Positions 838-28,955 of a stretch of DNA of 64,000 nucleotides are shown piece by piece. The stretch spans positions 1-64,000 of the forward strand of contig VJWM01000254.1 in NCBI GenBank assembly GCA_010909165.1, in the 5' to 3' direction. Position numbers and translations under genes: made by a program. Within the stretch, counting starts at the first letter, position 1; every line of letters starts with the position of its first letter. This DNA is from Anthoceros angustus. Its lineage: Eukaryota; Plantae; Anthocerotophyta. The notes below the pieces were generated by a model. It saw only the letters and a program-made list of their open reading frames with translations, had not been told where the DNA came from and did not search any database.

Positions 838-1495
838 TGTTAAATACTTTGTTTCCTTGAGGTAGCAGCCCACCCCAAGAGGGAGATCCCTACCCTTCTA
901 CTTGTAACCGGTCTCGCACATTCTGAGATGCTCCTGTGGACTTTCCTATTGAACGACAGACTGGTGACGAATGACCTCTTCTGTATGTCAGGACGGGACT
1001 GGACGTGTTAGTCTGACTATGGGGAAGTTGTGGCTTGCCGCTACAGTGTCACCGTGTGGCCGGGGGGGAAGAGCGTCCACAGCTTGATGTGGCCTAGTCT
1101 TTGCGCTCACCGAGTCTGCACCATACATACATACAGATGGAATTGCACGACCGATCACGAATCAAGTCCCTCGAGAACACAAAGCATATGACTCGAACAC
1201 ACAAAGAACTACCAAGCTAGAATCTTTGGTAGGGTCAAGGCACAAGAGCTTAGAAGCTCGCGATGAGCAAGGGGACTCGTCCGTCCATTCTTGAATGCCC
1301 TTCCAGCTTACAATGGCCGCTATTTGTAGCGGAGTCCTTTTCTAAAGTTGGCCCTACTTTAAACTCGGGATGCCTCGGAATCCTATGCACCGTTGGCTCC
1401 AAGAGGCGTTGTTGCGAGGTCCCTTGCTATCGAATAAAGCTTCATTCACACCACACAAAACATCCCCCTTGTTATTTCGTTCTTATCCTTGCACA
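838..1495 (-). repeat. 3' LTR
   Basis: TGTTAAATACTTTG...TTATCCTTGCACA, near-identical to 10551-11196 apart from many small indels. Confidence 0.95.
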
Positions 1496-1510
1496 TTGGC
1501 TCCCCCCGGC
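1496..1510 (-). other. Polypurine tract
   Basis: Minus strand GCCGGGGGGAGCCAA immediately precedes the 3' LTR. Confidence 0.8.
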
Positions 1511-1778
1511 TGGCGCCTGGGCTCGCTCCCCTGATAAGAAGGGCAAGGATGTAGTTACGCACACACACGACTCCATGATCCCTGTTACACTTCACACTGA
1601 ATTGCACACCACACCCTACATCGTATTGTTCACCCAGCTAAGAGCCACCGGGAAAGTTCTTCCATCTTCATGCCTGATGGTTGGTCATTAAGGCCTGCTT
1701 TATCCTGCATTACCTTTCAACTTTGATATAAATCCCGCATCAATCCGCAAGCGGTCTATCAAGTCTTTCGACTCCTCT

Positions 1779-2410
1779 TCAATCGACTCGATTAGGCTCC
1801 AAGGCATGCAGTGTTGGTCGAAAATCTACCACTCGGATAAGTGTTGGCTCGGGCGTGGGGCATTGGGCAGCCTTAAGGCGTCGGGAAGCATCATGAGCAG
1901 ATGACCATTCCCAAAAGCTAAGTCTTTCTTCAAGATCCGAGCCAAAGGATATACCAAGTAATACCAATCATTGAACTCGGTGACCTTGGGTGACACGCAA
2001 ATCGACTAACCAAGCTTGAAGTTCCCCATGGTTGGATGGTTTTCCGTGAAACATTGACCCGTCCACTGCAAGCTTCTACCCGGCACACACGATGCGACCA
2101 CAAGTGCATCCAAGATCCTCCCAACATTCATGACACCTCGGGTCCATATACGCATTGGACCTACCCATCGACTCAAGTCAAGGCGCCTCTCATCAAAACC
2201 TTCTATCGGGCACCACTCATGGTGCACCGATATGTGACAGGATGACTTCCTTCCTACTACGAGGCCTCTGCGGTGAGGGTCATAAGTAGGCGGAAGGAGT
2301 CCATTCACATCATGGTGCAATACACCTCCCATCAACTCGCTAGCTTTAAGTAGTTCTCTTGGCCACCATTGGCCACTCGTTGAGCTACCAACAATCACAT
2401 TCTCAGCCAT
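1779..2410 (-). CDS. Extra ORF between integrase and 3' LTR, frameshifted, unknown function
   Basis: ATG-initiated ORF 2006-2410 with probable continuation in 1930-2127 and 1779-1967, same orientation as pol. Confidence 0.4.
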
Positions 2411-2529
2411 TCACCCATCATACCCTATCCAAGTCTAATCCCACCTAAAAATAGTCTGTGGCTTAGGTTAGATGCCTTCAATCATGGTATGAGGCATCCT
2501 AATCGGGACCGCAGCTACTCATGGCGATG

Positions 2530-3650
2530 TTATCGACAATAGAATTTCTTGAGGTGAGACCCACTTACCGTCTCCGCAGCTTCCAGATCAGACGGTTTCA
2601 CCACATCTACTGACCCATTCTCATGTATCTTTTTGACAAGCCATGGGCCTTCCCAACGCGGCTTCAGCTTCGCCCCCGACTCCCTTTTGAGATACCTGCG
2701 GACGTTTAGCCTGAGGACCCATTCTCCCACAGAGAAACCGAACTCCTTCTTGTCCTCATCATACTTTTCTTTCTGCTTGAGTTTCTCTTCTTCGATGGTG
2801 AGGTAGGCTGCTCTTCTAACCTCATCCAATTCATGCAACTGTACAATCCTTGCATCTTCTTCCATAGACATAGCCTCCAGGATGCCGAATCCTCTTGTTG
2901 CCGTAGTGACCTGAGAGGGTACCCTAGCAGGTACTCCGTATACTAACTCGAAAGGGGAAACTCCCACAGCTGTTTTAACACGGGTTCGCATGGCCCAGAG
3001 GGCACCATACAGGTGTTGATCCCAGCGTTGTGGCTCATCCTGGCAAAGTTTAGACAACACTTTAATGGCTACCTTGTTTGAGCTTTCAGCTTGACCATTA
3101 TCCATAGGATGATAGGCCGTTGTTAACCTATGCTTGACAAAGAACATGGACATGACTTTCTCAACCACCTCGTTGACAAACTCTCGACCTCGATCTGACA
3201 CTATCTCTACTGGACATCCAAACCTTGTGATCACATGATGGTACAGGAAGTTCCCTACCATTTCTCGATAGTGCCGACACTTCTTCAACCCACTTGGTAG
3301 CATAGTCGATTCACATTATGTAGCGATTGCCATGAAATGACAGGGCTGATCGGACCTATACAATCAATACCCCACTTGACAAAGGGACCGCTAGGAAACC
3401 TTTGGACACAACAAACCACGCCGGTGACACTTGAGCAAATTTTGGCGAGACTACACTGCAATACTCACGAACATCCTTGAACAAGGTGGGCCAAGAAAAC
3501 CAGCCCTCGAATCTTTTGACCGATTGCGGTTGCATCAAAATGACCACCACACACGAGTCATGCATCTCAAAAGGATCCGAGTATCTGTCGCCCATACACA
3601 CAAGCGTAGGACCCTATCGGGACCGATTCTAAACAACTTCCCTTCTATCA
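2530..3650 (-). CDS. Retrotransposon integrase (frameshifted)
   Basis: ITRFGCPVEIVSDRGREF, TTAYHPMDNGQAESSN, SPFELVYG and the GPY/F motif KLKPRWEGPW. Confidence 0.95.
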
Positions 3651-3829
3651 TGGTGTATGCTTTCGACCAAGATTGTAACTTCCTCTTCATGCTTGGATCA
3701 GCTCCTTCCGGCATTTTCCTTTCCTTGAGATAATCTGCGATTTGTCCATACAAGGTTGCAGGGTTTTCAATCTTTACAGCTATCGCTCGGAATGTCGTAC
3801 CTGTGTTCGTCCTTGCATTCCTGCAGAGA

Positions 3830-4180
3830 CCTGCATCAGCCAACTTATGTGCCTTAATATTCTGAGCTTCGTCGATGTGTAGAAAACCCACTCCATCCAT
3901 TGTCGCCACAAATCTTGCGATCTGTATCAAGACTGGGGTTGCCACTGTACTAGCTTGGCTCAGAAATTGGACCTCAAGCAACATTCACGAGTCATGGCTC
4001 TTGATCATTACCGCTTTGCTCCACACTTGGCTGCTTCCACTAACCTGCCAGATCGCCATTGCCGGCCCTCCTTGTGGTTACGCGGCCACGGTCCTAGATA
4101 TCGAGCGGATCCGCACTCACGGGGAGATCTCACTATTGCGCCAATCCTGCGTTGCCAAATAACACGCTACGCGCTCGTTC
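3830..4180 (-). CDS. Second, degenerate RNase H1 (aRH)-like domain in pol
   Basis: Frameshift-joined NAG-IGAIVRSP ... AMAIWQ-LVEAAKCG-KAVMIKSHDS*MLL ... FLHIDEAQNIKAHKLADAG repeats the aRH motif order. Confidence 0.55.
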
Positions 4181-4235
4181 ACACTCCGGATGTCCGTCGG
4201 CTTCTTCCTCATACTCATCCAGACGCGAAGAACTC

Positions 4236-7200
4236 GACATACTTACGCGCAATTCTTAGAGACATGGCTTGTGAACCCGCGATGGTTTGTTCCTCCTTCA
4301 AAGCTAATTTGGCGGTCCAAGAAGCTCGTTCCTTTGTCGTGGCACATGTGTCAAGGACACGCTTCAAACTTCGCATTAGCTCCAGCTGTGGTGAAGAGCT
4401 CTCAAATTCCTCGCACGCACTTCATATGTTCCATGCAAGCTTGACAAGTAGTTGGCTATCCAGAAAGCATTGAATCGCACTCTATCATCGCTAGCTTTAA
4501 ACCATGTAGGAAAGCTTGGTACTCCGCCTCGTTGTTAGTAGCTAAAGGAATCGCAAAGCTTTCCTTCACAGTTTCCTTTGCATCAGGGGCCACCAGTACC
4601 ACACCTACTCCAGCGCGACCATGCGCCACAGCTCCATCGGTCCACAATTTCCATGTGTCAGCATCACTCAATGCGGATGGGTCAGCCCAAAGTGCAGCCA
4701 AGGTTGGGTTACCTTTTGTTTCCTCTTCATCGGCTTCTTTCTTTCTCCTATGGCTTGGCACAGTGAGAGTCAGGGCTTCCTCCATTTGCTCAGACTGACC
4801 TTGAAGACTGGAATCGATGCCCTTGCATGCATATCCACACAGGCCTGCCTCCAACTGTCTAAATTTTAGTGACTTGATCTGGACTTCAAAGTCATATCCT
4901 GAGAGTAGACATACCCATTTTGCAAATCGTCCGGTAGGATTGGGTATCATCATCGTATCGTGCCGCATGTAGGCTAACCGGAAAAAAATTTGCACGATGC
5001 CGTAATGGTGGAACTTCTTCGTTCGCAACCATTCTGCCGTCACTTGCTCAAACGCATTGTACCTAGTCTCACATCCGGTCATAAGCCTACCTGCAAAGTA
5101 TATTGGCAGGTACAGCTTAGTCTCATCATCCTGCTGGAATAAGCTGTATTCCAGAGATGCCCTTGTTACTTCCACACTCACATAGAATGTCCTTGACCAA
5201 TCTGGTGGTTTCATGACCTGGGGTGACACCATTAAATTTTGTAACCGCTCGTAGGATTCCATCATTGGTTCATCCCATACCGCCTCGATTCTTCCGTGGA
5301 TTTATGCGGAGGTCTGCTACCTGTGAAATTGGGTATTAACCTCCTGTAGTAACTTGCTGTACAAATGATCTTACTTCCTCTATGCTAACCGGAAAAATTT
5401 GCACGATGCCGTAATGGTGGAACTTCTTCGTTCGCAACCATTCCTGCCGTCACTTGCTCAAACGCATTGTACCTAGTCTCACATCCGGTCATAAGCCTAC
5501 ACGCAAAGTATATTGGCGGTAGTCTCATCATCCTGCTGGAATAAGTTGTATTCCAGAGACGCTCCTGTTACTTCCACACTCACATAGAATGTCCTTGACC
5601 AGTCTGGTGGTTTCATGACCTTGGGTGACACCATTAAATTTTGTAACGCTCGTAGGATTCCATCATTGGTTCATCCCATACCAGTTCACGATTCTTCGCG
5701 TGGATTTATGCGGAGGTCTGCTACCTGTGAAATTGGGTATTAACCTCCGTAGTAACTTGCCTGTACAAATGATCTTACTTCCTCTATGCTAACGGGCCTT
5801 GGCGAAACTTCTTGATCTTCCCAGTTCGCATGTACACCTTTGGAATCAATCATGAACCCCAAAGTTCCCCTTGATGACAAATATGCACTTCAAGGATTTA
5901 ACCCGATATTTGCTAGGGTCGACAGAACACTTCCTCCAAGTTTCTGGATGATCGACTCTTCTCCCATACACGGCAAAGTCATCTAAGAAGACACGTAGGA
6001 ACTTCCTCTTGTGGTGCCGAGCCTCCATCATGACTTCACGAAAACAAGATGGCGCATTGCAAAGGCCGAAGGCATTACCTTGTACATGAACACACCCCAT
6101 GGTGTCACAAAAGCGATCTTGGTGATCTTCTTCACAGATAGCGACTGATGAAATCACGAATAACCATCGCAGAAAGAGTATGTCTCGTGACGAAACCTCA
6201 TCCGACGGCAGCCCGACATACTTACGCGCGCACAGAGACATGGCTTGTGAACACCTCGGCGATGGTTTTGTTCCTCCTTCAAAGCTAATTTGGCGGTCCA
6301 GTGAAGCTCGTTCCTTTGTCGTGGCACATGTGTCAAGGACCTTTTGCTTCAAACTTCGCATTAGCTCCGAGCCTGTGGTGAAGAGCTCTCAAATTCCTCG
6401 CACTTCATATGTTCCATGCGCTTGACAAGTAGTTGGCTATCCGCAAGCATTGAATCGCACTCTATCGCTAGCTTTAAACCATGTAGGAAAGCGGTACTCC
6501 GCCTCGTTGTTAGTAGCTAAAGGAATCGCAAAGCTTTCCTTCACGTTTCCTTTGCATCGGGGCCATCGGCACCACACCTACTCCGGCGGCCATGCGCTGA
6601 CTCCATCGGTCCACAATTTCCATGTGTCGGCATCACTCAATGCGGATGGGTCAGCCCAAAAGTGCGGGGTTGGGTTACCTTTTGCTTCCTCTTCATCGCT
6701 TCTTTCTTTCTCCTACGACTTGGCACGGTGAGAGTCGGGCTTCCTCCATTTTGCTCAGGTGTGAAGGCGGAATCGATGCCCTTGCATGCATATCCACAGC
6801 TGCCTCCAACTGTCTAAATTTTAGTGACTTGATCTGGACTTCAAAGTCATATCCTGAGAGTATACATACCCATTTTGCAAATCGTCCGGTAGGATTGGGT
6901 ATCATCATCAGGTATCGTGCCGCATGTAGGCTAACCGGAAAAAATTTGCCTGATGCCAGGTAATGGTGGAACTTCTTCGTTGCTGCAACCATTCCTGCCG
7001 TCACTTGCTCAAACGCATTGTACCTAGTCTCACATCCGGTCATAAGCCTACCTGCAAAGTATATTGGCGGTGACAGTCTCATCATCCTATTTGGAATAAG
7101 CTGTATTCCAGAGATGCCCTTGTTACTTCCACACTCACATAGAATGTCCTTGACCAATCTGGTGGTTTCATGACCTGGGGTGACACCATTAAATTTTGTA

Positions 7201-7770
7201 ACCGCTCGTAGGATTCCATCATTGGTTCATCCCATACCAGTTCATGATTCTTCCGCGTGGATTTGTACAGAGGTGCTGCTACCTCTGTGAAATTGGGTAT
7301 TAACCTCCTGTAACTTGCCTGTACAAATGATCTTACTTCCTCTATGCTAACGGGCCTTGGCGAAACTTCTTGATCTTCCCAGCTCGCATGTACACCTTTG
7401 GAATCAATCATGAACCCCAAAGTTCCCCTTGATGACAAATATGCACTTCAAGGATTTAACCCGATATTTGCTAGGGTCGACAGAACACTTCCTCCAAGTT
7501 TCTGGATGATCGACTCTTCTCCCATACACGGCAAAGTCATCTAAGAAGACACGTAGGAACTTCCCTCTTGTGGTGCCGAGCCTCCATCATGACTTCACGA
7601 AAACAAGATGGCGCATTGCAAAGGCCGAAAGGCATTACCTTGTACATGAACACACCCCATGGTGTCACAAAAGCAGTCTTGGGCTGATCTTCTTCACAGA
7701 TAGCGACCTGATGAAATCCTGAATAACCATCGCAGAAAGAGTATGTCTCGTGACCAGAAACCTCATCCAG
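4236..7770. repeat. Internal tandem duplication of the RT C-terminus/RH/aRH region (about 4236-6203 vs 6214-7770), with a nested ~415 bp duplication near 4972-5790
   Basis: The same sequence blocks recur, e.g. CTTGACAAGTAGTTGGCTATC at ~4440 and ~6421, and GGAAAAAATTTGCACGATGCCG at ~4980 and ~5391. Confidence 0.85.
4290..5265 (-). CDS. Gypsy RNase H plus additional archaeal-type RNase H (aRH), copy A
   Basis: PPDWSRTFYVSV, PIYFAGRLMTGCETRY and RFAKW (RH); WKLWTDGA, AGVGVVL, TNNEAEYQAFLHG, DSQLLV and HVPRQRNE (aRH). Confidence 0.9.
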
Positions 7771-8010
7771 TATCTCATCCACATGAGGAAGGGGAAACCT
7801 GTCCTTCCTCGTAGCTTTGTTTAACTCCCGAAAGTCGACACACATCCTAATTTTCCCATTCTTCTTCATCGAAATTACTATCGGGGATACCCACTCCGGA
7901 TATTGCACCGCTTCTATGCATCCAGCAGCTTTCAACCTCATTACTTCTTCCGTACCTCCTGCATGCGTCGGTGACAACTCTCAGTTCACACCCTTGGTTT
8001 TGTGCTGCGG
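6214..8010 (-). CDS. Reverse transcriptase, RNase H and aRH, copy B (frameshifted)
   Basis: WVSPIVISMKKNGKIRMCVDFRELNKAT, FPLP, DGYSGFHQV, KTAFVTPWG, MPFGLCNAP, VFLDD. Confidence 0.95.
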
Positions 8011-8479
8011 ATATCGATTTTGAACTTGCGTAGGTTCGTAGTTGGCATTTCTTCGTGCCCGATGATGAACAAATGTTCATATCGGAGAAAAGATTCTGTA
8101 ACGCTCAAGTTCCTCTCCTTCTATGTCCGTACCAACTTTGGCAACCTTCGACACCGTTGGCTCCAAAAACTTCAATTCCTTCAAGTCGGGATGTTGGATC
8201 ATGCGAGTTTGAGCTTATCTTGGGCCAATCGAATGGATAGGATGTGGAGTGTCTCGTTCATCGTTGAATGCCTCTGGTGAAATCCACCTCTGGTCCGAAC
8301 CACTTGTCACCATACAGAGGCTTGGATCCTGCTTTGAGGTGCTACTTGTCATGTTGAACTCTCAGTGCCATGCCTTGATCGAACCGGTCTGTTGGCGGGC
8401 CAATTTCCGTGATTCCAGATCCCGTGGTGATCGGCTTTCACTAACTCTAACCATGGTTGGCCTAGGATGACACCATATG

Positions 8480-8760
8480 CCCGGCTCGGGAAGTTCCACA
8501 ACGGTGAAACCTATCCATACTCTTACTCCGTGAACAACAACCTTGATGTTTTCCGGGACCCCACCACAGGAGCTTTGTATTGACGATCTCAAGACTTGCT
8601 TACATGCTAGTTTGCGGGTGGTACCTAGACCAAGATCTTGAGCCAAGCGGCATTGATCAAGTTCGTAGATGACCCTCCATCCACGACGGCCGGGACCTCG
8701 ACCTCATTGATCCAAGCCCGTTCGCGGTGAGTCGTTTTGCGGAGCCATCCAATCGGTCGG
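8480..8760 (-). CDS. Retroviral-type aspartic protease (frameshifted)
   Basis: AWINEVEVPAVVDGGSSTNLI (D[T/S/G]G catalytic motif). Confidence 0.85.
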
Positions 8761-9137
8761 TTTGATGAGTCAGGATTGCCAGTTATCGTCAATGTTGTGG
8801 CAACTTCCCCTTTTAGCTTAGCCTTTCCCTTCTTGTGCTTCAACTCCCGAGTACTTAAGGCAGCGGTGATCTCTTGTCGTGCTGCAGGGAGGATTCCGAA
8901 CAGCTGCCTGAATGTCATTTTTACTTCCCTATCTGCAAGATCTTCCACAAGTGAGTATGGCGGTGCACTGCTGGCAATTGGAGGAACAACGCTCCTTACG
9001 TCTTCGCCTCTTAGGCTTCTCGAGCGCCGATGTCTTCCATCTCTATTTCGGCCCACACTTCCTTCTTTCCTTTGTTGTTTCGCCTCTTTTGTATAGTCAT
9101 CTTGACGTCGGATTCGGAGGCGTTTTCTTACCCGCGG

Positions 9138-10195
9138 CTAGCAGAAGCGCACGATGGTTGCCTTTGTTGGCATGCAAGCTTCGGTGAAGACTCCTCGGAC
9201 GACAATCTCCTCTTCTGGCAGCGGTGGGCGACGGGTTTCCCCAGTTGTCTGGCCTATAGGTTTGAGCGGTACCCGACCACGACCTCGTGGTGCACCTCCT
9301 CGACCTCGGCTGCTGCTGCTTGACGAGTTCTTAGGACATCTCCACTCTATGTGGCCATGCTCCCCAGCTAACACATGGTGTGTTCATGCACAACTCAGTG
9401 TGTTGAGATCCACACTTCTTGCATGGTTCACGGGGCTTCATTGTTGTCGGCTCATGTGTCTTCCCGACCGCCATCCTCGTGATCATGGCCTCCAACTCGT
9501 TCACTCTCTTTGACATCATAGCCAGGGGTCCTCCTTCGATTTCTTCATCTTGTGCAGTTTTTCTGTTTCGAGATGGCGCTCGAATGGGGCTCTCGGACGA
9601 TGAAGGATCTGAGTCCGGCGAATGGCTCCTGCTACGATGGCGTTCTCGGTGGCGAGGCTTACTTGGCTTGGTACGTGAGGAAACTTTGTTTTTTTTCATG
9701 GCTAGCTCAATGACATCATCCAAGGTCCTCTCTTCATCTTCCATCCGGCGGGTGTAAAACTCATTTCTTAAGCCATGTATGAACTTCCGCTTCACCTTCT
9801 TGAGTTTTCCGCCTTCCTTTGTGTAGCCTAGCTTCTTCACTGTCCTCGTCCGCTCCACATATGTTGCGATGGATTCACGACTTTCCGACTGTAATCAAGT
9901 CGATCTTCAATCCTTGTGGAAAGACTCACTTGAACTTGGTTAAGAAGGCAACACAGCACTCAGTCAACACGAAGCTCATCCTCCAATGTCTCATACCATA
10001 CTGGACTCCCTTGCGAGATCGGAAATACTTCAAGTACTTTTTTTCTGTTCCCATCAAACGAGCTTTTAAAACCTTCTTGAACAACCACAGATGTTCGTCA
10101 GGATCTTCATTTGGGGACCCATAGTACTGTGGCAAGGTATTGGGGTCAAGACCGGGCTTCATAGACAGGTCAGATCCTGAGTACCCCATGTCCAC
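9138..10195 (-). CDS. Gag with zinc knuckle(s) (frameshifted)
   Basis: LPQYYGSPNEDPDEHL, KFIHGLR, CKKCGSQHTELC and the CCHC remnant GEHGHIEWRCP. Confidence 0.85.
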
Positions 10196-10533
10196 AAGCT
10201 ACTTTCTGTCGGACAGGCTGGTTTCTAACAACCCACACTTTCGGCGGACTCTTTGACTATCCTAAGAAAGAGGAACTGATATGATAGAGGGAGTTGGGGA
10301 AAACCAAAAGGAAGACGGGTATCTTCTGGCAGCAAAGCAATCATTTCTTTTATGGTCAGCCTTTTACTACCTCCTGCTCTATTCCTATTTGTCAGTTTTG
10401 AAACATTCCTCATACTAGGACTAAGCAATGCTGGAAACGCTGGTTCAGACGTGTATGATACCCAAGGGATGTGGTAGTCGTGGTGTATGCAGAACGCAAA
10501 ATCTGATCTTCACACCGCTTGCTATCGAGGACA

Positions 10534-10548
10534 CGCGTCCGGGTGCCA
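10534..10548 (-). other. Primer binding site
   Basis: TGGCACCCGGACGCG two bases downstream of the 5' LTR on the minus strand; cognate tRNA not assigned. Confidence 0.75.
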
Positions 10549-10550
10549 AA

Positions 10551-11196
10551 TGTTAAATACTTTGTTTCCTTGAGGTAGCAGCCCACCCCAAGAGGAGATC
10601 CCTACCCTTCTACTTGTAACCGGTCTCGCACATTCGAGATGCTCCATGGACTTTCCTATTGAGCAGCGGTGACGAATGACCTCTTCCGTATGTCGTGACG
10701 GACCGACGTGTTAGTCGACTATGGGGAAGTTGTGGCTTGCCGCCTGTCACCGTGTGGCCGGGGAAGAGCGTCCACGGCTTGATGTGGCCTAGTCTTTGCG
10801 CTCACCGAGTCCCGCACCATACATACATACAGATGGAATTGCAGCACGGCGATCACAATCAAGTCCTCAGAGAACACAAAGCATATGACTCGAACACACA
10901 AAGAACTACCAAGCTAGAATCTTTGGTAGGGTCAAGGCACAAGAGCTTAGAAGCTCCATGATGAGCAAGGGACTCCGTCCGTCCATTCTTGAATGCCCTT
11001 CCATTACAATGGCCGCTATTTGTAGCGGAGTCCTTTTCTAAAGTTGGCCCTACTTTAAACTCGGGATGCCCTCGGAATCCTATGCACCGTTGGCTCCAAG
11101 AGGCGTTGTTGCAGAGGTCCCTTGCTATCAGAATAGAAAGCTTCATTCACACCACACAAAACATCTCCCTTGTTATTTCGTTCTTATCCTTGCACA
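10551..11196 (-). repeat. 5' LTR
   Basis: TG...CA-bounded copy of 838-1495. Confidence 0.95.
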
Positions 11197-11740
11197 GGAC
11201 AATGGCACGTCCTAAATGAGAGACATCTCTCCCAGCCTGGGCTGATGAGGAAGGTAGAACAACGCATGCCTCGCATGTGAGAGATTTAGAAGTCATTCCA
11301 CCAGCGGCACGCTCTGCACTTTCAAGAAAGAGGAACGCGAATCTGCACTTGCCTTGTGAAATCAAAGCTACAGTTACAGCTCTACAACTGGCTCGTTCTT
11401 TCCTTCCTACCCTCTATGAGCTAGCACCTGTTCACTAGTGAACACAAGGAGGCTGTGGGATGTTTCTCCTGCATGCAGCATGCGCACCTGAACTTGCGAA
11501 ATGACCAGGAAAGGACAGATGAGAATGCACCAACCGTGCCTAGCCTAGCACCACTACTCTTTTTTGTCAATTGCAGGCGAGCCTGAACGTTCGAAATGAG
11601 TAGGAAACGACAAACGAGAACGCATTGGAACAAATGAGAAGGCGTTGGAATGCACCAACAGTGTCTCCCTCGAGACCATACCTGACAGCGGATTGAAGCT
11701 GTCATCGCCACACCCAACTCCTGCTGGCCAGGCAAGTGAG

Positions 11741-12574
11741 CTATGGTGAAGACCAGTACAGTCCTCTTGTGAGGGTGGAGTAAAACTGGGGACACTGGAA
11801 GTTCTTCTCGCCTCCCCATTTGACCTCCATATCCGTGACCTTGCGAATCACGCTTGTTAAGATGCTCAACACATCTGCCGTTTTAGAGCCCTCAATGATG
11901 GCGTCCATAAAAGCTGTGATAAAGTTTGTGCCTTTCCCGGTATCTCTGAAGGATTGTTGTCCATGACTGGTGGAGTAAACAATGAGACAATCGCAAAGAT
12001 TCCGGGGCTCGGACTTCTCCGGCTCTCTTGCTCACCACTTGGCTCTCCTCAACTTCAGAGTCCTCGGCTTTCTTGATTTTGTAAGGCTGTCAATTTGTCG
12101 ACAAGCATTGATCACAAAGACCTTAGGCTTGTTTGCAAGATACCTGGATTCAGAGATGGGCTTCACGATATCATCATCAACATATAGCTTCTCCCCACTT
12201 GCTTCACTTATGAGGATGTAATCTCGTCCATTTTCATCGATCCCCCCATGGGCATTAATGCAACACAGAAAGCAATCGTCATTAGCCATGGTAGGGAGCT
12301 TGGCAATTCTCCTAAGATAAGATTTGACGTCCTCAGATTGGTTCACCACTATATCCGTATCGAACGCCAAATTCTTGAGAAGAGCTTCAAGTCGCCCTCT
12401 GTCGACAGCTCCACCAGGTCTGTCCTTTTCTATGCTCACAATCACTGCCAAACCTCTTCGTTTGCCTGCTGCCACACGGTCATTAGGATAACTCTGCAAA
12501 ATGTTGTACTCACTGCCTGCACTTGCGGGATAGCTGTAGGAGTTCCCCGACATACGCTGTTTTTGATTTCGATC
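11741..12574 (-). CDS. Caspase-like peptidase (clan CD, family C14A-like), p20 + p10
   Basis: p20: RRGLAVIV, DRPGGAVD, DCFLCCINAHGG (His 12248-12250), LANKPKVFVINACR (Cys 12101-12103). In the same frame after TGA 12032: p10 DCLIVYSTSHGQQSFRDTGKGTNFITAF...DVLSILTSVIRKV...QCPQFYSTLTRGLYWSSP*, stop at 11741-11743. Confidence 0.9.
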
Positions 12575-12703
12575 CTACAACAAGTGCAACCTCAGAGCAT
12601 GCAAGGAACAATGTATACTACAAATTTGGCAGTCATCCTACTAGAAACTACTTCTCGAAAACCAGGACATTCAAACGCATTCAGATGGTTCAGAAATCCT
12701 AAC

Positions 12704-14260
12704 CTTCAGACTCTAGTTCGGCTCTGGCCAGATCCCTTTTCGCCCCAAGATGACGTGCCCATCTACCACGGTTGCATACTCCTTGTTGGCCTTTAAAATA
12801 GGTGGCTGGGCTTGTGTACTGGTGGAGATAGGTCCCCAAAACTGCGTGTAGTGTGCATAGCCCTTTTCTTTTGTAGTAGCCACCTCCTTGACAAGCTTAT
12901 CTGTTAGAATGCACTGATGTTTTCTGTGTCTACATGGCGTGAGGGCCACTACACATTCACGCCTCAGGACACCTTCAACTAAGGTAACCCTGCAACCTCA
13001 TGAAGCACAAAATGAGCAATTTGAGATACAATATGCTCTTGCAAGAACGATAAGGACCTCAAAATAACCTTGATGGATCGAGCTAATATATCTATGTAAC
13101 AACCTATTTCGCATTAAATTCTACAAAGATATCAAGAAACTCTGCGGATATGAGAAATGTGCAATCTTGATCATCACATTGTAAACGCAAACCGATAAAG
13201 ATGTAATCAATCAATCTAACATCCTCATCAACCCAACGTTTCTTCAAACAATAATTGTACAATAAAACCTATCACACATACAGACAAAAACAATGTAGAC
13301 GTGGTCAATAACAGAAAACATTCAAAAACCAGTGTTGCAAGTAGGACTAAGGAAAGATTCATCTTTGAAAGAGTTACATACTTGCAACCGAGGGAAAAAT
13401 CCTGGTGTGAGAAATGTGCAATCTTGATCATCACATTGTAAACGCAAACCGATAAAGATGTAATCAATAGAATCATCCTCTGCATCCTCTGCAGGCCATT
13501 CTAGTTGTCGATTTGCTCCTGCTATATCTTCTTCTCCATACATACATGTTGGTATAAAGTAACGAACTTGATCTTCTCCATCTCTACTTTCCAAACAAAG
13601 GTGTAACTCAAGAAGGAGTTGGATAAATTGTTCTTCGCTCACAATGGTCTCTTCAAGCCCAACCTTGTTCAAAGACATCTTTAGAAGCTTGCTCAACCCA
13701 CACTTGCTTATAAACCCATTTTGAAGCCAATCTCGTCCATCACCAGTTCGCCAAATATTCCAATCAATTGACCAAAAACCCCCATTCCCAGCCATTGGAG
13801 GTTAAGCACCACAAGCCCTGATATCTCAAAATATATGATCTCCCCGGAATCCTTAAGGTACGATGCAACCACTTTCCAACTATCCTCCTTTACCATGAAA
13901 TCCAAAAGAAATCTTTTATAATCCTCCGAGATGTGTGGATGCTCTAATGCCACCTTACATGTGTTATGGAATAACTCACTAAACTTGTCAATAGAAATGA
14001 TTGGGGTACCTTGTTGGTCTTCAGCCCACCTTTGTACATGTATCCTTGTTTGCTCACAAATATTGGGAACTGGGGCCAAGTTACTAACAACTTGATGCAA
14101 CTTCTTCTCCATACTAGTGCGCAATGCATACACATCTTCCCAACTTTGTCCATTGATAAAAGTAGGTTCATACGATAACTCCACCAAATTTTTAAACTTT
14201 TTCTTCACCAATAACATCTCTTCACATATTGCAACAGAATGCTTATCCCCTTGAAGCTTG
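12704..14260 (-). CDS. COR domain and TORNADO1-like C-terminal region (frameshifted)
   Basis: YLKDSGEIIYF, LVVLNLQWL, YFIPT, IGLRLQCDDQDCTFLTPGFFPRLQV, YIDILARS and GVTLVEGVLRRECV match TORNADO1-family motifs; intron 13269-13381. Confidence 0.85.
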
Positions 14261-14795
14261 TCACCAAATGTTACGATTACATGTACATAAGGTTTCACCT
14301 GTTGACCCAATCGCATTGGAAGCAATAAATTTTAACCAATAAATAAATTCTTCCCTGAAATCTTTTCTATCCTTCATATCCATGGTTGAGAAATTCCCAC
14401 CGAACTTGAATGGATTGTAAACAAATAAGAAGACAGAAGAATTATTAACATTAGGAAAAACAAAATCATGAAGCGCGTGATACTCTCTATGGCCTGCAAG
14501 GTCCCAAATTGTAATCCTTAATTCGGGAACATCTTTTATCACCTCCACTTCAAATCCAAGTGTTCGAGGTATCTCTTTCGAAATTGTTTCGCGTTCCATT
14601 TCAGCATAGTCTTCATGTGTCTCCATCTTCATCAAAGTGTTTCTTATGGTCGTTTTGCCTGCGACAAAATCATTTTAGTGATCATTCCTAACCGGTAAAT
14701 ATGAGCAATATGAATACACGTCACTCGCTCTACATTCAACATGCCCTATGCCGCTTACCTGCGTATGGAAATCCACAAAGTACAAGGCGACATGA
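14261..14795 (-). CDS. Roc (Ras of complex proteins) GTPase domain
   Basis: P-loop SCRLVLCGFPYAG|KTT split by intron 14659-14758; switch I PRTLGFEV; G3 ITIWDLAGHREY; G4 IVTFGDK after a frameshift. Confidence 0.9.
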
Positions 14796-16180
14796 TTAGA
14801 TTGGCATTGTGGGAATTCCTGCCAGAGCTCTTCTATATTCCTTGTTTTGCCGCAGCACTTCATCCACTGCAGCACCTTTCCCCTGCCTTTTCCACGCAGT
14901 GTTTTCGAAAGACATACGCTCCAGATTGGTGTTCACCTGCAGAGTCTGCATGAGCTCTCGAAACATATCGTCATCCAACCCCTTCCAGTCATCCAATACC
15001 AACGTCTTGAGGTAGCGATTGGTCTGCAACGACCTGAAAAACATCTTCGAGAGGTTGCACGATCCCGCACGCTCCTGAACCAGGTGCAAACGTTTCACGA
15101 ACTGGCACCTCTGCAGGATTGGCATCAGTTTGCAGTAGTCGTCGTTATGGCTAGAGTAATTCTGTCGGACTGTCACACGAGTGATGCTGCTGTTGTCACA
15201 CAGTCCCTCCAATCCCTGGCTTATGAGACAGCTAGATAGCTCTAAATGCGTTAAAGTGGTGTTGGCGCGCAGCATGCGGGCCACAGCTTCTCCCAATGAA
15301 GCGTCGATAGGCTCGTGGCCAGATCCAAATATGTCTAGCCGGAGTTGTCTGACAGACTCGTTGGCAGAAAGAGGCTTGGGAGCAACACTCCCAGCCTCCT
15401 GCTCTGCGTCCTGCATACCAGGGGTCAATGATCGGGCCAACAGCATGGCCGTTATCCCTGCCTGCTTTGGCTTACTTCGGTTAAATCCTATGTGCAGGTG
15501 GTCAAGCGTGGTGTTTTGTGCCAGAGCATTCCCTATCTTCAACGCTCCCGCCTCATCCATGCCTATATCGGAAATCCCCAGGTCGCGAAGGGCAGGAGAG
15601 CTAGTCAGGATGTCAGCCAGGTGGTCTGCTCCACCACCTTCCACTAGAGTGTCTCCAGAAACATACAAGCTGCGGGCACTTTCTCCTATGGTCGGGTTCC
15701 CAGAAAGAAACAAGCTGCGGAGCACCGAGCTGCGATTCTCTCGCAGGGCTGCAGCTATGCGACCCAGTCCATCGGCAGTCATGCCAGTGCATCCCATATT
15801 AAGACATTGCAAGGTGCGGCTCGATCGCAAGGTAGCTGCCAGTGCAATGCAGGCTCCACCTGTTCCAAACCCACGGTACCCACTCAAATCCAGCAATTCC
15901 ACTACTGCATTCGAGTTAAGACCTTCCAAGAACGCCGTCGCCTCTGCCACCGTCACTGTGCAATTTTGACGCCCTAGAGGGTCGAGCTCGATTGATCTGA
16001 GCGTGGGACATTTACCCATAGCTGTCATAAGGCGCAAGCGCAGTTCCTGTTCCGCCTTTGGATGTTCAACGTCCATCTCGAACAAGTACCCATAGGCGTC
16101 CACACGAGGAAGCCGACTGAGAGTAGGCGAAGGTGACTCGAGCTCCGCAAGCAGGGCAAGCAGCTCCTCAGACACAGGAA
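14796..16180 (-). CDS. Ribonuclease-inhibitor-like LRR block B
   Basis: Repeats such as LRSSRTLQCLNMG, LRSLFLSGNPTIG, NTTLDHLHIGFN, NTTLTHLELS and NRYLKTLVLDD. Confidence 0.9.
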
Positions 16181-16480
16181 CTGGAATGGTGACAACAAAG
16201 ACAGGGAATCGAGTCAAAACGGCAGACTTGCATTCATGATTCAAACGTCTACATAGTTTCAACAAAAACAACCGCAGCTTGGAAGTTGGAATGTAAGTTG
16301 TTCCATACCTGCGTCGCCTGAGGAGCTGGCCATAGTGGCCATCGCCGGTAGTGGCACCTGTTCCGAACCTGCAGAAGTGACAGAAGTCAGATCCCTGTCA
16401 TGTCTACCTAGTTTTTGGGTTCTAACTTGTGAGACATACAGATGAAGGACAAGGGTAGCTAGCTAGCTTGGGGCACCTAC

Positions 16481-17853
16481 CCTGCCGTCCAGCGCTTCTT
16501 CTCTGTATGTTCTTTGTGAGAGCATTCTGGATGCGTATCACTTTGCCTTCACTGTCCCAGGATGTGTTCTTGATGGAAATGTTCTCCAGAACGTTTTTGC
16601 AGTTGGGTCGCAGAGACCACATCAAGTCCCGGAACATGTAGTCATCCAACCCATCCCAGTCATCCAACACAAGCGTCTTGAGGCTGGGGTTGTTGTGCAA
16701 CCCTCGGAAGAACTCCTTGGTGAACCTGCTGGCCCCGTAAGGTTTCACAAATATGAGCCGCAGCTCCTTCAGAGTCTTGCACTTCTGCAGGATCTCCATC
16801 ACAAAGGGATCCAGCTCCTCGTCCTCCACGGAATGGTAGTGGTGCAAAAACAGTGTCGTGATGCTGCTGTTGTGAGCCAGTCCCGACAACCCGCGGGTCA
16901 CAAAAAAGCTGGTTACGAGCAGGAACTTCAAAGTGGTGTTCGATCGAAGCATGGCAGCCACAGCTTGTGCGAGCCCGGCCTCCGCAACCACACCCTTCCC
17001 CCCTGCCAGCCCCAGTACCTCAAGGCAGAGCTCGGTGATGGACTGGTTAAACGGAGGAGCAGCACTTGGACCGTCAGACTCCTCCTCCGACGAGGACACA
17101 TCGCAGCTTAGGGCTCTCAAAACAGGGATCAACATTGCTGCCTGCTCAGGGTCCTTCTGCACGTTATATCCGATATCAATCCTGTTCAGAGTTCTGCTGC
17201 GAGCCACAGCGTCTGCAATCACCACGGCGCCCGCACCATCCATCCCTATCCCGAATATCCCGAACACTTTCAGAGCACGACAGTTGGACAGGATGCCGGC
17301 AACCTGTTGCGCCCCGGCAGCATTTCCTATCTCATTCCCATCGAGATACAACACGCGGAGGACAGATCCGCTGTTGTCTCGCAAGGCTGCGGAGATATGC
17401 CCCAGGCCTTCCACACTCAGCTCGAGCCCCGCAAGTCCAGAGTCCCCAAGCTGCGACTGTGTCGCAGGACGGCATCAGCGAGTGCAGCGCACGCTTCCGT
17501 CGTCCCGAATCCTTCGATGCTGCACAAGAGCCTTTCCAACACCGGATTGCGCTTCAACCCGTTCAGCAATGCCAATGCCTCCACGTCCCTCACGCTGTAC
17601 AACCCGAGCTCCCCAAGGGATTCAGATGGATCGTCTTGAGGCTCCGGCAGTTGCCGATGGCGGACATTATCCGCAAGCGCAGCTCCCGCCTGGACGCGTC
17701 TGAATCACGCTCCCCGGCCAGGAAGTAGCTGCCCCAGGAATCCGCAGGAGGAGGGAGAGCTGGCAGGCTCGGGGAGTCGGACTCGAGGCTGACGAGCAGG
17801 GAAACCAGCGCGGCGGGAAGAGGTGGAGGCGGAGGCGGAGGCGGTTCCGCCAT
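16481..17853 (-). CDS. Ribonuclease-inhibitor-like LRR block A (two frameshifts), Pro-rich N-terminus
   Basis: MAEPPPPPPPPLP..., LRVLYLDGNEIG, NTTLKFLLV and NPSLKTLVLDDWDGLDD; collinear paralog of block B. Confidence 0.88.
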
Positions 17854-21912: not shown

Positions 21913-23390
21913 TTTGGGATTTCTGCTTTCTGCTAATGAGCTTCACAGCATCCAGTCTTTCATAGAGCTAATTTTATGGATGAACGTACCATACTTCTAA
22001 AAACATCGATCCTTCTTAAAACGTTCACTCCAGAGTCACAGCAACAAGCATATAGTGAGCATGTTCGGCAAAGTCGTAAAAGTGAGCACAATGGCGAGGA
22101 GGGATCAAGCCTTTTGTACTCCCTTCTTTCCCGTAGTTTTGTTTTCCCTACTATCTTCTTTCCTTTCTTTCTCACCATATATGATATCTTCTACATAAGC
22201 TTGAAGAATGAAAATTGTTGACAATATTAGTCAATATAACTACTTTCCTCTCATACGTGAGCTTGTGTAGTCTAAGCTATATTTGACCTACTCTCCAAAG
22301 GAGTGTCTAATGCTCTTGGAAGATATAAGACTACAATAATATCCATTTGCCTATATGTATTCCAAGTCACATTTAGCATCATGAAGAAAGTTGCTTGGAG
22401 ACTCCCATCTGTGCAAACTTCATATCATCCATGTGCTCTTCAACTACTAAGAGGTCTTCAGGTTTTTCATCACGATTTGTAAATTAGTACAAGTTGATAA
22501 TTAGATGCCAATGTGAAATGGAAGCAACCACTATCTTCCTTTACTTTAATACTAGCTCAAGTCAGTTTGCAGAAGTTAGGTACTGTGGGTTAATATTGAA
22601 AACTTCTATGTGTTATTACCATAAACTGTTATACTATTTCATATCTTTTAAATATTTTTATTGAATAAATTATACATCTTAAATGACCTTGTGAAAATAT
22701 AAATTAGAGCTATTCCTGGACTTCATGAAGTAGACCTGATCTTCTCCATCTGTTGGGCTTCTGGGTGAATTTAACTAGTCGGACTAATAGGAATTGGAGA
22801 GGGATCACACCTCCAAATGCACAACTTCATCCATAATCATTGACAATTAAACTGAAGAAAGGAGCCTTTTGCGTGTTAAAGTAACTTATTGGCTAAAACT
22901 ACAGGATAGCATTGTAAGAGACCTTCTCCAAGCTGCAAACATAATTGATAAAGATATGTTTCTCTTGAAAAACATTCCTTCCTTTAGCTTTGGGCTTTCT
23001 AAAACAATCATACGGACATAACTCTTTGCAATAAATAGAAAAAGGCAAGCATGAAGTCGAAAATGACCTTACCTGAAATCACTAATTTTAAAATAAAATT
23101 TGATTAACAAATGACATGCCCCAAATTTAAATTGTGATATTACATGAGGAAGTTCAAAACTAAATAAACATGGTAGTATGCCTGCATTTCTACGTTTACT
23201 TAATTTGATATTCTAAAATCAAATTGTAATATTCTTATGATTTGAGTACTAGATATCATATCATTTTTATTGTATATCTCTCAATTGTCTCATGTATGAG
23301 AGATCAATACAGCATAGAATAATGAGAAATTGACTAATCCAGAATAACGGGAACGTTGAGCCCCAAAATAACGAAAAATTAACGAGAAAA

Positions 23391-24226
23391 CGACAAGTGC
23401 CAAAACAATAGAAGAAGAAGAAGAAGAATTTTATTTAAGTCCACTAAGGACGGATTTCCGTCATGGGACTTGGTACTTAACAACTTGTACCATGGTTGCC
23501 TAAGCTACTTGCACCAAGGGCATCCATTCCCTTTAGGCACCCCATCTAAGTACCGATCCAAGCTCAGGATGCTTAATCACGGCGTTCTTATAAATGTGTG
23601 TCCATTTGGCCTAGGCCATTTGGACACACATAGGATAACCTCATGCCCCAAAACAATAGGATAACAACATGTCCCTAAACAATAGGATAACCACAAACCC
23701 CAAAAGAATAGGGAAACGACGAGCATTGGTAAAACGGCGAGTTGCTAAATAACGGGAAAACTACGAACCCCAAAGTCATGGAAAAACTACGAACCCCAAA
23801 ATAATGGAAAAGCGACAAGTGCCAAAACAATAGAAGAAGAAGAAGAATTTTATTTAAGTCCACTAAGGACGGATTTAGTCATGGGACTTGGTACTTAACA
23901 ACTTGTACCATGGTTGCCTAAGCTACTTGCACCAAGGGCATCCATTCCTTTAGGCACCCATCTAAGTACCGATCCAAGCTCGGGATGCTTAATCACGGCG
24001 TTCTTATAAATGTGTGTCCATTTGGCCTAGGCCATTTGGACACACATAGGATAACCTCATGCCCCAAAACAATAGGATAACAACATGTCCCTAAACAATA
24101 GGATAACCACAAACCCCAAAAGAATAGGGAAACGACGAGCATTGGTAAAACGGCGAGTTGCTAAATAACGGGAAAACTACGAACCCCAAAGTCATGGAAA
24201 AACTACGAACCCCAAAATAATGGAAA
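23391..24226. repeat. ~420 bp direct tandem duplication
   Basis: CGACAAGTGCCAAAACAATAGAAGAAG... starts at 23391 and 23813; copies near-identical. Confidence 0.9.
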
Positions 24227-24296
24227 AAGAAAACGATGACCCCAGGGAAAAATGCGAGTCACATAATAATCGGAAAACTATGAGTCCTAAAATAAT

Positions 24297-24825
24297 GGCT
24301 AGGCCTAAATATCGGTTCGCGGTACGGCTGGCGAACATGCCATGCCATGAGCATGGCCTTCCTCTCCCTGCCCCTCTCTCTCGTATCCGGCAACCCAGCG
24401 GCCGACCCACCGAGTGGGAACTAATTCAAGTTCCGTCGTCACGAATCAGTAGCTACACTCAGCACGATACAAAGTCGAACTTCGTCAAGACGCATTGAAA
24501 GAAAATTTCCCTCCACCAGCCTCAGGCGCAAAATGACAATGCGCTACAACCTCATCCATCACGGGCACGATCAATATCGTGCATCCTCCCGACCGGTCTT
24601 TCAACTCTTACGCGTGCCTTGAGCAGAGCTCTCTCCGCTCTCGTTCTCAAGCGAGCGAAGGCGGCGATTATGAGCGGCGGAACTTGAATTAATTTCCCAT
24701 TGCTCCCGGTGGCTCGGTCACGGGTTGGCATAGATAAGAGAGAGAGGAGTAGGGAGAGGAAGGCCATGCTCATGGCATGGGGTTCGCCAGGCCGTACCCT
24801 GGCGAACCGATATTTAGGCATAGCC
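24297..24825. mobile_element. Non-autonomous Mutator-like element (MULE/MITE)
   Basis: ~150 bp TIRs starting GGCTA(G/T)GCCTAAATATCGGTTCGC; perfect 9 bp TSD TAAAATAAT at 24288-24296 and 24826-24834. Confidence 0.88.
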
Positions 24826-24834
24826 TAAAATAAT

Positions 24835-25247
24835 AAGAAACTGGCCATCCCTAGAACAACGGGAAACGGCGAGCTCTAGAACAAAAGAAAACCGACGAGC
24901 TCTAGAGTAAGAAAAACTGACCAGCTCTATCCTAAGAGAAGACCGGCGAGCCCCAGAATAATGGTAAATCAGCGAGCCCCAAAATAATGGGAAATGAGCG
25001 AGCCCAAAATAACGGGAGATCGACGAGCCCCAGAATAACGGGAAATCGACGAGCCCCAAAATAACGGGAAATCAGCAAGCCCAGAATAACGGAGATCGAG
25101 CCCCAAAATAATGGAAATCGTGAGCCCCGAATAACGAAATCGAGCCCCAAAATAGCAGAAATCAGCAAGCCGAATAACGGAGATCGTGAGCCCCAAAATA
25201 ATGGGAAATCGGCGAGCCCCAGAATAATGGGAAATCAGCGAGCCCCA
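24835..25247 (+). repeat. Minisatellite, ~25 bp unit GAGCCCCA(A/G)AATAA(C/T)GGGAAATC..
   Basis: About 16 degenerate head-to-tail units; related units recur at about 27475-27720. Confidence 0.9.
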
Positions 25248-25612
25248 GTTTGGAGTTTTCCTGTTATTCAGCAACTCACCGTTTTACCAATGGTCATCGT
25301 TTCCCTATTCTTTTGGAGCTTGTGGTTATCCTATTGTTTTGGGACTTGTGGTTATCCTATTGTTTTGGGGCATGTGGTTATCCTATTGTTTTGGGGCATG
25401 TGGTTATCCTATTGTTTTGGGGCATGTGGTTATCCTATTGTTTTGGCACTTGTCGTTTTCTCGTTAATTTGGTGCTCGTCGTTTTTCCCATATTTTTGGG
25501 CTCATCGTTTTCCGGTTAATTTGAGGCTCGTCATTTTTCAGTTATTTTGGGGCTCAACCCTAGCGCAAACTAGTGGCGCTCACAAGACTTTGCAACACTA
25601 CAAGATATTCTC

Positions 25613-25846
25613 AAACTTGTCTCAATATTCATGAAAATGGTGCATCATGATGTCTTTATATAGGTTTTCGTAATCAAATAAAAAGTGATCAGCATGAAGT
25701 AGAAGAGAGAAAGTGACAATGCCCAAAACTATGTCTCAATATTCATGAAAATGGTGCATCATGATGTCTTTATATAGGTTGTCGTAATCAAATAAAAAGT
25801 GATCAGCATGAAGTAGAAGAGAGAAAGTGACAATGCCCAAAACTAT
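25613..25846. repeat. ~115 bp tandem duplication
   Basis: TGTCTCAATATTCATGAAAATGGTGCATC...GCCCAAAACTA occurs twice. Confidence 0.9.
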
Positions 25847-25999
25847 TAATTTAAGATCAATGAGGTTTCATCCCATTTGATTGACAAACGACATATCCTA
25901 TATTTAAATTGTGATATTACAAGAGGAAGTACAAAACAAAATAAGCTTGATATGTATCTGTTTTTTATTCTAGTCCATTATAAACTATTTACTAGATAT

Positions 26000-27420
26000 G
26001 CATATGTACAATGAGACATATTGAGGACCTCCCTTTGCTGGAGGATGCTCAGGTGGCCTTTGGAATCCTTTCCTTCTGTTTCGCTAGGCGCCCTGGGTAC
26101 CTCATCCGTCTGTTGCCTCGTCTCGGTCCTTTTGTCCGGCTCGGGGTTTGATCTGAAGATTATGGATACTCTTGGGGACATCTTGGGCTCGGGGCTTTTG
26201 AGTGCCACAGGGGCGACTGGCCCAGCAAGCATCCACTGCAATTTGGGCGTGGGGCTCTCATCGGAGGTCTCTTCCCCGGCGGCTTTCTTGGGGAGTTGGG
26301 CCCTCTGCCTGCCTTGGCTTCCGTTTCATCCTCCATGACAAGCCCTTTCTCGAGGATCTCGTATCAAGTGTGGAGGAGGAACCTTCTCTCTCCAGTCGTC
26401 CTTGAGGCAGGCGAGACATGTTATCGGCGGATGCTCGGAAGGACTTCCCTCCTTTCTCTACATTTATCACTGATGGCTTTAGGGGATTGCAGGCATCTCT
26501 ACTCGAGAAGCAGCTCGGCCAGGCTTTTAAGTCATCCTCCGGGACCCCTCCATCTCCAGTCCACTAGGCGGCTCGCTCTTGTTGCAGGAAGGAGGCGGTG
26601 CCAGCTCTTGGCCCGCCCATGCATACGGGATTTCACATCGCACCAACCACCTTCACTCTGCGATGCGATTCCGTCTCGGCCTACTCCGGCTGTGGCTTCT
26701 TCGCTCCTCACTTGTGAGTGCGGCTCTGCCCTTAGCGTCTCGGTGTCCACCTTGCTCGTTGTCCCCAGTCATCGCATTGCCACTCACGATGCCATCCGTG
26801 GCGTCATGTTTGCCATTGCTCGCGAAAGTGGCTATATGGCTGGAGGCGGGAGTATACTCTTCTTCTGGTCGTTCAATCGAGGCGGACTTATACCTTGTCG
26901 TGGCGACGGTTGTGGTGGCGGATGTAGTGGTTCTGACCACGCGTGGCGCCACCTCCGCCCAGTCATCCTGCCGTCAGTGGGCTGCCGTCTGGCTCTCAAG
27001 GTCCATAAGTATAGCGAGGATGCAAGCGGGCCACCTCTTTATCCGCTTGCTCTAAAGCGTATGGGGCAATGGTGAGGACTTTGACAAATTCATCAAGTCT
27101 TGTGCCAAAGCTTACCATCTTGTGAGCATAGTCTTGTCCCCTCTCGTACTTCACATACTTCCGGCGGGTTTCTATTGCTCTTCAGCGCTCTCAGCGATTC
27201 TCCATAAGGCGGCGGTGGGTGATGCCTTTTCCTCTTCCTCCGTGGTTTGCGGGCCGTTTATTCTACACGCATATGACATTGTGGGTGCGATTGGTCACTT
27301 TAGGTAGGAAGCTCAGTTGCTCCTCTTCACTCCGACCCCCGGGTCCCCATTTGTTGTCCCCTCCTAGATGGTCTCTTTCCATCGTTCTTTCACCTCAATA
27401 AATCATCTTTTTTTTTTTTA
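26000..27420 (+). mobile_element. 5'-truncated non-LTR retrotransposon with restriction-like endonuclease (CRE/R2-like), degenerate
   Basis: CECG...HLARC zinc knuckle, HRIATHDAIR, ADL/ADVVV, KVHKY and LYPLAL motifs in RLE order; ends AATAAA followed by poly(T) at ~27408-27419. Confidence 0.75.
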
Positions 27421-28479: not shown

Positions 28480-28955
28480 GTCATGTCGTGGAAAGATAGC
28501 AGGCTACTGGGAGGTCTAGTGGGCTACTTGGAGATATAGTGGGTCTAAGTGGAGGTCTAGTGGGCTACTTGGAGGTCTAGAGGTCTAGTGTCTTGTGGTG
28601 TTTTTCCTTCTAATTGCGGGCTACTTGGAAGTCTAGTGTTGTGTCTTGTGGTGTTGTTTGCTTGTGGTGTTTTTGCTTCTAACTACGGGTTACTTATTGC
28701 TTCTCCCTGCGTGCCTGCCCCACCTCCCCATTCAGCAGGTCTCTAAAATTCGTTTGCAACAGCCCTAAAATTCATTTTTAACAAGTCTTTAAGTAAAATA
28801 AACAGTAAAAGTAAACCCTCGAGGCCTACCCACGACCACCCAAACAGGAACAGGAGACCCAAACACGAACAGGAGAAGACTACCCAAACACGAACAGGAA
28901 AAGACTACTCAAACACGAACAGGCGAAAACAATCCACGACTACCCAAACACGACA
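28480..28955. repeat. Short degenerate tandem repeats (GGTCTAGTGGGCTACTTGGA; CCCAAACACGAACAGGA)
   Basis: Repeated units visible at 28505-28640 and 28838-28953. Confidence 0.7.

Follow-up and report, generated by a model that had tools for sequence, protein, structure and literature searches.

The stretch of DNA analysed here, called the window, comprises 64,000 nucleotides of the hornwort Anthoceros angustus (contig VJWM01000254.1, positions 1 to 64,000). On its minus strand, positions 12574-11741 encode a domain with the large (p20) and small (p10) subunits of a caspase, which is very probably the last exon of a TORNADO1-like gene encoding leucine-rich repeats (LRRs), a Roc GTPase and a COR domain. 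An LTR retrotransposon (838-11196) lies on one side, with terminal repeats at 838-1495 and 10551-11196 that are 92% identical, fragmented reverse transcriptase, RNase H and integrase on the minus strand, and internal duplications (4214-6203/6197-7768); its flanks, GGGAC and GGACA, may be a target duplication of 5 bp that has lost one letter.

On the other side are genes for an F-box-Tubby protein (29774-31685), a serine carboxypeptidase S10 (35039-36568), a CCZ1/INTU longin protein (36893 onward), a DUF4487 protein (41300-44015), an ARM protein matching plant profiles (44594-46321) and dyskerin (54960-56690). The long open reading frames (ORFs) of the plant genes in 29774-63000 are unbroken, unlike those of the Roco-caspase gene. 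Beside dyskerin, an unbroken ORF of 1041 amino acids (57252-60377, minus strand) is of low complexity and has no Pfam or ESM Atlas match. Tandem repeats with units of 25-26 bp, in both direct and inverted orientation, are clustered in 23376-28923 together with a 416-bp duplication (23386-24227), and related sequence occurs near 49600-50500; these are possibly remnants of non-autonomous transposons. A Pfam search of 50 window ORFs found no substrate gene.

Residues and class of the caspase-type domain

Motifs, matches to PF00656 and the PDB, and residue alignment define a p20 region (12083-12499) and a p10 region (11741-11991), the latter including the C-terminal strand of the caspase dimer interface. 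The p20 region contains RRGLAVIV. Alignment with caspase-8 places the Arg179 equivalent in DRPGG (codon 12421-12419), the catalytic His in NAHGG (12250-12248) and the catalytic Cys in INACR (12103-12101), where Asn (12109-12107) occupies the Gln283 site, while the Arg341 equivalent (11947-11945) lies in SFR, aligned to SWR of caspase-7. The final strand is followed by a TAG stop (11743-11741), and the gene ends directly after p10. The S1 trio of the window domain is Arg, Asn, Arg; the His-Cys dyad and both S1 arginines are intact, and Thr occupies the Ser347 site. A preliminary description of this DNA, made from the letters alone, had reported the p20 motifs, and both S1 arginines with Gln replaced by Asn, and all were recovered in the domain.

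The pieces before and after an in-frame TGA were searched apart from each other. Each exceeded the gathering score of PF00656 (p20 half, positions 1-129, E 4e-15; p10 half, positions 151-233, E 3.8e-13), and the second match confirms the p10 that had been read in the same frame beyond the TGA. Among the best 60 PDB matches listed per half, all are animal caspases, led by caspase-8 for the p20 half (3.8e-6) and an ancestral caspase-3/6/7 for the p10 half (4.5e-7). Because both halves match PF00656 and caspases in the PDB, the domain is not a chance resemblance, and a caspase-type fold is virtually certain.

The S1 residues are Arg179, Gln283 and Arg341 in caspases, and Leu, Asp and Asp/Glu in metacaspases and paracaspases (PMC2064784). 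The acidic set is present in three of five bacterial C14 controls and absent from the window domain, and the basic S1 site, together with the end of the gene directly after p10, separates the domain from the paracaspase MALT1. The QACxG motif is also absent, as the window reads NACRQ. S1 residues, fold scores and profile matches point to a caspase-type domain that is C14A-like, has a basic S1 pocket and is neither a metacaspase nor a paracaspase, in agreement with the earlier assignment. We class it as caspase-type, not as an animal caspase, because it lacks Gln283 and does not nest among animal caspases; it probably belongs to a caspase-type lineage that works like a caspase without being a canonical animal one. 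From its residues, we predict with good confidence a preference for acidic P1 residues.

The host gene and the state of the window copy

Although the preliminary description had treated the domain on its own, it forms the C-terminal exon of a gene of LRR-Roc-COR type. Position 12574 follows an AG splice acceptor, so it is not the gene start, and translation probably does not begin at the ATG at 12553 either. A GT..AG intron (12575-12703) separates the caspase exon from the exon for the C-terminal part of COR; contigs of sequencing run X1 show a 12559/12703 joint, with 18 letters matching the caspase exon start, which is absent from run X2, and the donor at 12704 was predicted independently from relative P0009. 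The exon at 12704-13269 encodes the C-terminal COR and the linker to the caspase, and contains several single-letter frame breaks. It also holds an exact 61-bp duplicate of COR coding sequence (13151-13211, a copy of the upstream sequence at 13408-13468), at which the X1 contigs are strongly different, which suggests local mis-polishing or gene conversion.

Roc and COR-A are encoded at 13384-14659, with frame breaks near 14300 and 13710 as assembled. Roc followed by COR is recognizable here with weak profile scores, both below gathering (Roc, PF08477, E 9.7e-6 and 26.3 bits against a cut-off of 27; COR-A, E 0.042), and the exon matches the Roc-COR ORF of contig L004 at E 1e-17. The Roc P-loop is completed by splicing of an intron at 14660-14758: X1 skips 14758-14657 and so joins the two halves of the loop, a joint absent from X2, and L004 has an intron at the same position. 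Two tandem ribonuclease-inhibitor-type LRR modules, about 40% identical to each other, occupy 14759-17853 together with the start of Roc (5' end approximate); as assembled, this region has an in-frame TAA (14797-14795) and frame breaks near 17596 and 17425. L004, from another sample (SRR33208241), has ORFs for LRRs, for Roc-COR and for the end of COR plus the caspase, arranged as in the window and with introns at both of these positions, and contig L005 likewise has COR followed by the caspase.

The TGA (12034-12032) falls in the intersubunit linker (11992-12082), within roughly 88 nt that the assembly probably shifts out of frame. Contigs of runs X1 and X2, which come from one sample of the same species, were aligned to 11650-17600; X1 is RNA-like, its nature as RNA being a guess. 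One extra letter behind 12080 is carried by the whole contig depth (86.3/86.3 in X2, 731.2/731.2 in X1), and two extra letters behind 11992 by most of it (114.7/151.5 in X2, 731/871 in X1), both gaps falling in short C runs of the coding strand. Because the two gaps sum to three, p20 and p10 lie in one frame. The TGA that had been taken as an in-frame stop to be read past is therefore present in the assembly but probably an assembly error rather than a true stop. Stop-codon readthrough, RNA editing and a naturally split p20/p10 gene are rejected on account of the compensating gaps in the contigs, and a tiny intron around the TGA because the nearest GT..AG spans only about 13 nt.

The contigs support a frame that gives an open, acidic linker in which Asp-Ser (12062-12057) comes 14 residues past the catalytic Cys. 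It is a candidate self-cleavage site, and its spacing is that of Asp374 in caspase-8; in the part of the comparison covered, the Asp position is not conserved and one relative has no linker Asp.

Two independent sources, the X1 contigs and an alignment to P0009 that allows for frameshifts, indicate a third gap near 12736-12741. The contig rows listed give no correction of the in-frame TAA at 14797-14795 or of the shifts near 17596, 17425, 14300, 13108 and 13010. Sequence differences of about 0.3-3.5% separate the X1 and X2 contigs from the window, and these contigs may represent close paralogues or another accession. It is possible, if doubtful, that the family is real and the window copy a decaying pseudogene, with the gap-filling contigs derived from intact close paralogues: the gene as assembled has at least eight breaks, including the TAA at 14797, only about 545 bp separate the caspase stop from the LTR retroelement, and at the caspase exon the contigs mismatch the window at 5 of 354 letters in X1 and 11 of 312 in X2. 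However, all X1 and X2 depth carries the extra letter at 12080, as does most X2 depth at 11992, the gaps sit in short single-base runs, and the catalytic and S1 residues of this copy are all intact. Moreover, X2 contigs show a difference of just one letter over 12559-12876 and 13843-14191, which means that the sample matches the window locus very closely. On balance, most of the breaks are best explained as errors of long-read assembly within short runs of a base, and we lean towards a window copy that is intact in the plant.

Plant relatives, fold and origin

A word-based homologue search with the p20 half gave no match, and a full HMMER scan gave 142. The top group includes Marchantia polymorpha Mp6g00900, Mp6g00860 and MARPO_0108s0037, M. 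paleacea Mapa_003498, Riccia sorocarpa, R. fluitans and the hornwort Nothoceros aenigmaticus. The domain is already visible in databases, since UniRef automatically labels the Marchantia and Riccia proteins "Caspase family p20 domain-containing protein". In these Marchantiales the caspase domain follows an alpha/beta-hydrolase. In contigs L001, L002, L003 and L006 a caspase ORF precedes NB-ARC-LRR ORFs, in some contigs with a hydrolase-like ORF between them (recognized by eye; no Pfam match). In L002 and L006 a donor-like GT closes the caspase ORF upstream of the NB-ARC-LRR ORFs, from which we infer caspase-NLR fusions in these two; candidate loci are L002 1855-12643 (tandem), L006 591-6749 and L001 10001-18614. 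The domain is thus joined to three receptor types, Roco, hydrolase and, putatively, NB-ARC-LRR, and the window gene is one member of a multi-copy family in the host genome.

Among the other plant rows covering each site, 16 of 17 keep Arg179 and 17 of 20 keep Arg341, and the Gln283 site is occupied by Asn in 18 of 20. His or Cys is lost in P0010, P0012, P0017 and the second caspase of L002, which lacks the catalytic His and both S1 arginines; inactive copies are thus common. A caspase fold that does not cut after Asp, acting as a scaffold or decoy like c-FLIP or having its specificity shifted by the Gln-to-Asn and Ser-to-Thr changes, is nevertheless rather improbable. Such a reading could draw on these inactive relatives, on the unconserved linker Asp and on the replacement, across the plant group, of one of the three S1 residues named in PMC2064784. 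On the other hand, the dyad and both arginines are kept in the window copy and most relatives despite 30-45% mutual identity, and Asn at 283 also occurs in the animal-like rows P0052 and P0057. Drosophila Dronc lacks this Gln as well, and still cuts after acidic residues.

The fold comparison, for which the preliminary description had proposed a model of the S1 pocket, rests on the intact relative P0003 (46% identical over p20), modelled from an 18-row alignment (pLDDT 87.1, pTM 0.88), as the window p20 alone gave a single-sequence model with pLDDT 39. Against 48,161 PDB representatives, the predicted P0003 model sides with animal caspases (Z about 27 to caspase-3, -8 and -9; best three matches 27.3, 27.3 and 27.2, rmsd 2.2-2.8 over 215-222 residues) over MALT1 (22.1), AtMC4 (18.7), AtMC9 (17.7) and Yca1 (15.2), and has p20 and p10 without metacaspase additions. 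The top structural neighbours in the ESM Atlas are animal caspase clusters, and the plant-group profile matches animal caspases with E down to about 6e-37, the S1 positions being in register.

The tree comprised 63 rows, with five bacterial C14 proteins as outgroup, after 50 long-branch or redundant rows had been dropped from a 113-row set; the window row was p20, X and p10, with the linker left out. The rows contained no eukaryotic metacaspase, MALT1 or Reticulomyxa sequences, and most animal-like rows are unnamed. Within this sampling, a single branch sets the 32 animal-like rows apart (98/98 with bacteria; also 99/97), five Picozoa-like rows, one of them named Picozoa sp., group together (99/96), and the window row falls among the plant rows. 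With the bacteria, plant monophyly is weak (80/43), the long bacterial branch attaching nearby; without them, the bryophyte group (Marchantia, Riccia, Nothoceros and other contigs) forms one side at 100/99. The AU test rejects a tree constrained to hold the window row together with the animal-like rows (p-AU 0.022). The phylogeny that had been suggested, run with bacterial C14 sequences, therefore sets the plant group apart from the animal-like rows, and on this sequence evidence the bryophyte caspases appear to stand outside the sampled animal caspases, beside the Picozoa-like group.

The Picozoa-like group (P0016, P0015, P0039 from L014, P0051, and P0021 from L015) includes a Picozoa protein and a Tara Oceans contig and keeps Arg179; at their ends, P0016 seems by eye to have ankyrin-like repeats and P0039 to have a ubiquitin-like domain (a faint match).

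The top PDB matches and ESM Atlas neighbours, all animal caspases, could be taken to mean that the segment stems from contamination with animal DNA or was recently acquired from an animal by horizontal transfer. That reading is largely refuted and very improbable. The closest sequences are those of Marchantia, Riccia, Nothoceros and contigs that look plant-like, the animal set as sampled does not include the plant group, a DNA contig spans the COR exon, the intron and the start of the caspase exon, and the neighbours, such as the ARM and F-box-Tubby genes, are of plant type. The preliminary description had itself named contamination as a refuting outcome, and the segment proved to be spliced to a plant Roco exon and to have liverwort and hornwort relatives. 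It had also proposed a horizontal or ancient origin; recent transfer from animals is now unlikely, and the origin is retention from an old lineage or an old transfer, two routes that cannot be separated because the tree root is unreliable. One motif pattern found no relative in prokaryotic genomes and viral contigs, and disfavours a prokaryotic or viral donor only weakly for that reason; a plasmid scan gave weak matches only (E 0.03 or worse), and a metagenome scan low-GC loci with animal-like caspases only. Caspases in Reticulomyxa have been used to argue for an early origin (PMC5982838), which agrees with the present results.

Proposed function and comparison with known systems

The best explanation, which we favour with moderate confidence, is that the domain serves as the C-terminal effector of a plant Roco receptor, acid-specific, activated by dimerisation and acting in immunity or cell death. 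The LRR modules would sense a ligand, and Roc-COR would change nucleotide state and dimerise, as is established for Roco proteins (PMC4104024 for the dimerisation of Roc-COR). Initiator caspases are activated by dimerisation. Two caspase domains might likewise pair through the p10 end strand by induced proximity, after which the caspase might cleave itself in the acidic linker and go on to cut substrates following Asp, and possibly Glu, by means of the predicted two-arginine S1 pocket, the output being immune signalling or cell death. An immune or cell-death role seems reasonably likely, because the same domain is putatively joined to NLR-type receptors. The wider proposal of an old, active, Asp-directed bryophyte caspase lineage, separate from that of animals and serving as a swappable effector of Roco, hydrolase and NB-ARC-LRR receptors, is about evenly balanced.

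Caspases are described as restricted to animals (PMC10896300) and plants as lacking them (PMC12521494). Such statements are contradicted by the occurrence, in hornworts and liverworts, of a caspase-type protease that has the Asp-binding arginines. In the literature covered, which includes few subscription papers, there is no account of bryophyte caspases, Roco-caspases or caspase-NLR fusions, and no paper naming Mp6g00900, Mp6g00860 or MARPO_0108s0037; in the text and the available part of the supplements of a survey of NLR N-terminal domains (PMC11218826), caspase fusions are unmentioned. The old question of whether a real caspase underlies caspase-like activities in any plant becomes testable, as the tractable model Marchantia polymorpha has apparently intact copies in Mp6g00900 and Mp6g00860. 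That the plant and Picozoa-like groups are separate is relevant to the time at which caspases originated, and the fusions would represent a new effector class for plant Roco and NLR receptors. If the lineage is indeed old and active, it would amount to a plant inflammasome-like system that is absent from flowering plants.

The domain shares with animal caspases (MEROPS C14A; caspase-3/6/7/8/9) the p20 and p10 subunits, the His-Cys dyad, Arg179, Arg341, the C-terminal dimer strand and the fold (Z about 27), but differs in having NACR for QACxG and Thr at Ser347, and in that the plant domain has no CARD or DED prodomain and is fused to Roc-COR, a hydrolase or NB-ARC-LRR. Plant metacaspases (C14B; AtMC4, AtMC9) share the clan CD fold and the dyad, whereas their S1 is acidic (Leu, Asp, Asp/Glu; PMC2064784), their specificity is for Arg/Lys and their fold is more distant (Z 17.7-18.7). 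MALT1 has a similar caspase-like dimeric fold (Z 22.1), but an acidic, Arg-specific S1 and Ig and death domains that the window gene lacks. Reticulomyxa (PMC5982838) and Picozoa P0016 also have the caspase type outside animals, with Asn or Asp at 283 in the Picozoa-like group; unlike the present case, they are not land plants and have other partner domains. The Marchantia and Riccia proteins belong to the same plant caspase lineage, with the same S1 signature and 38-39% identity over p20, although their domain follows an alpha/beta-hydrolase and not Roc-COR. Finally, TORNADO1 and other Roco proteins share the ribonuclease-inhibitor-type LRRs followed by Roc-COR, units that dimerise; TORNADO1 is described as ending with ROC-COR (PMC4104024), whereas the window gene carries a caspase-type domain after it.
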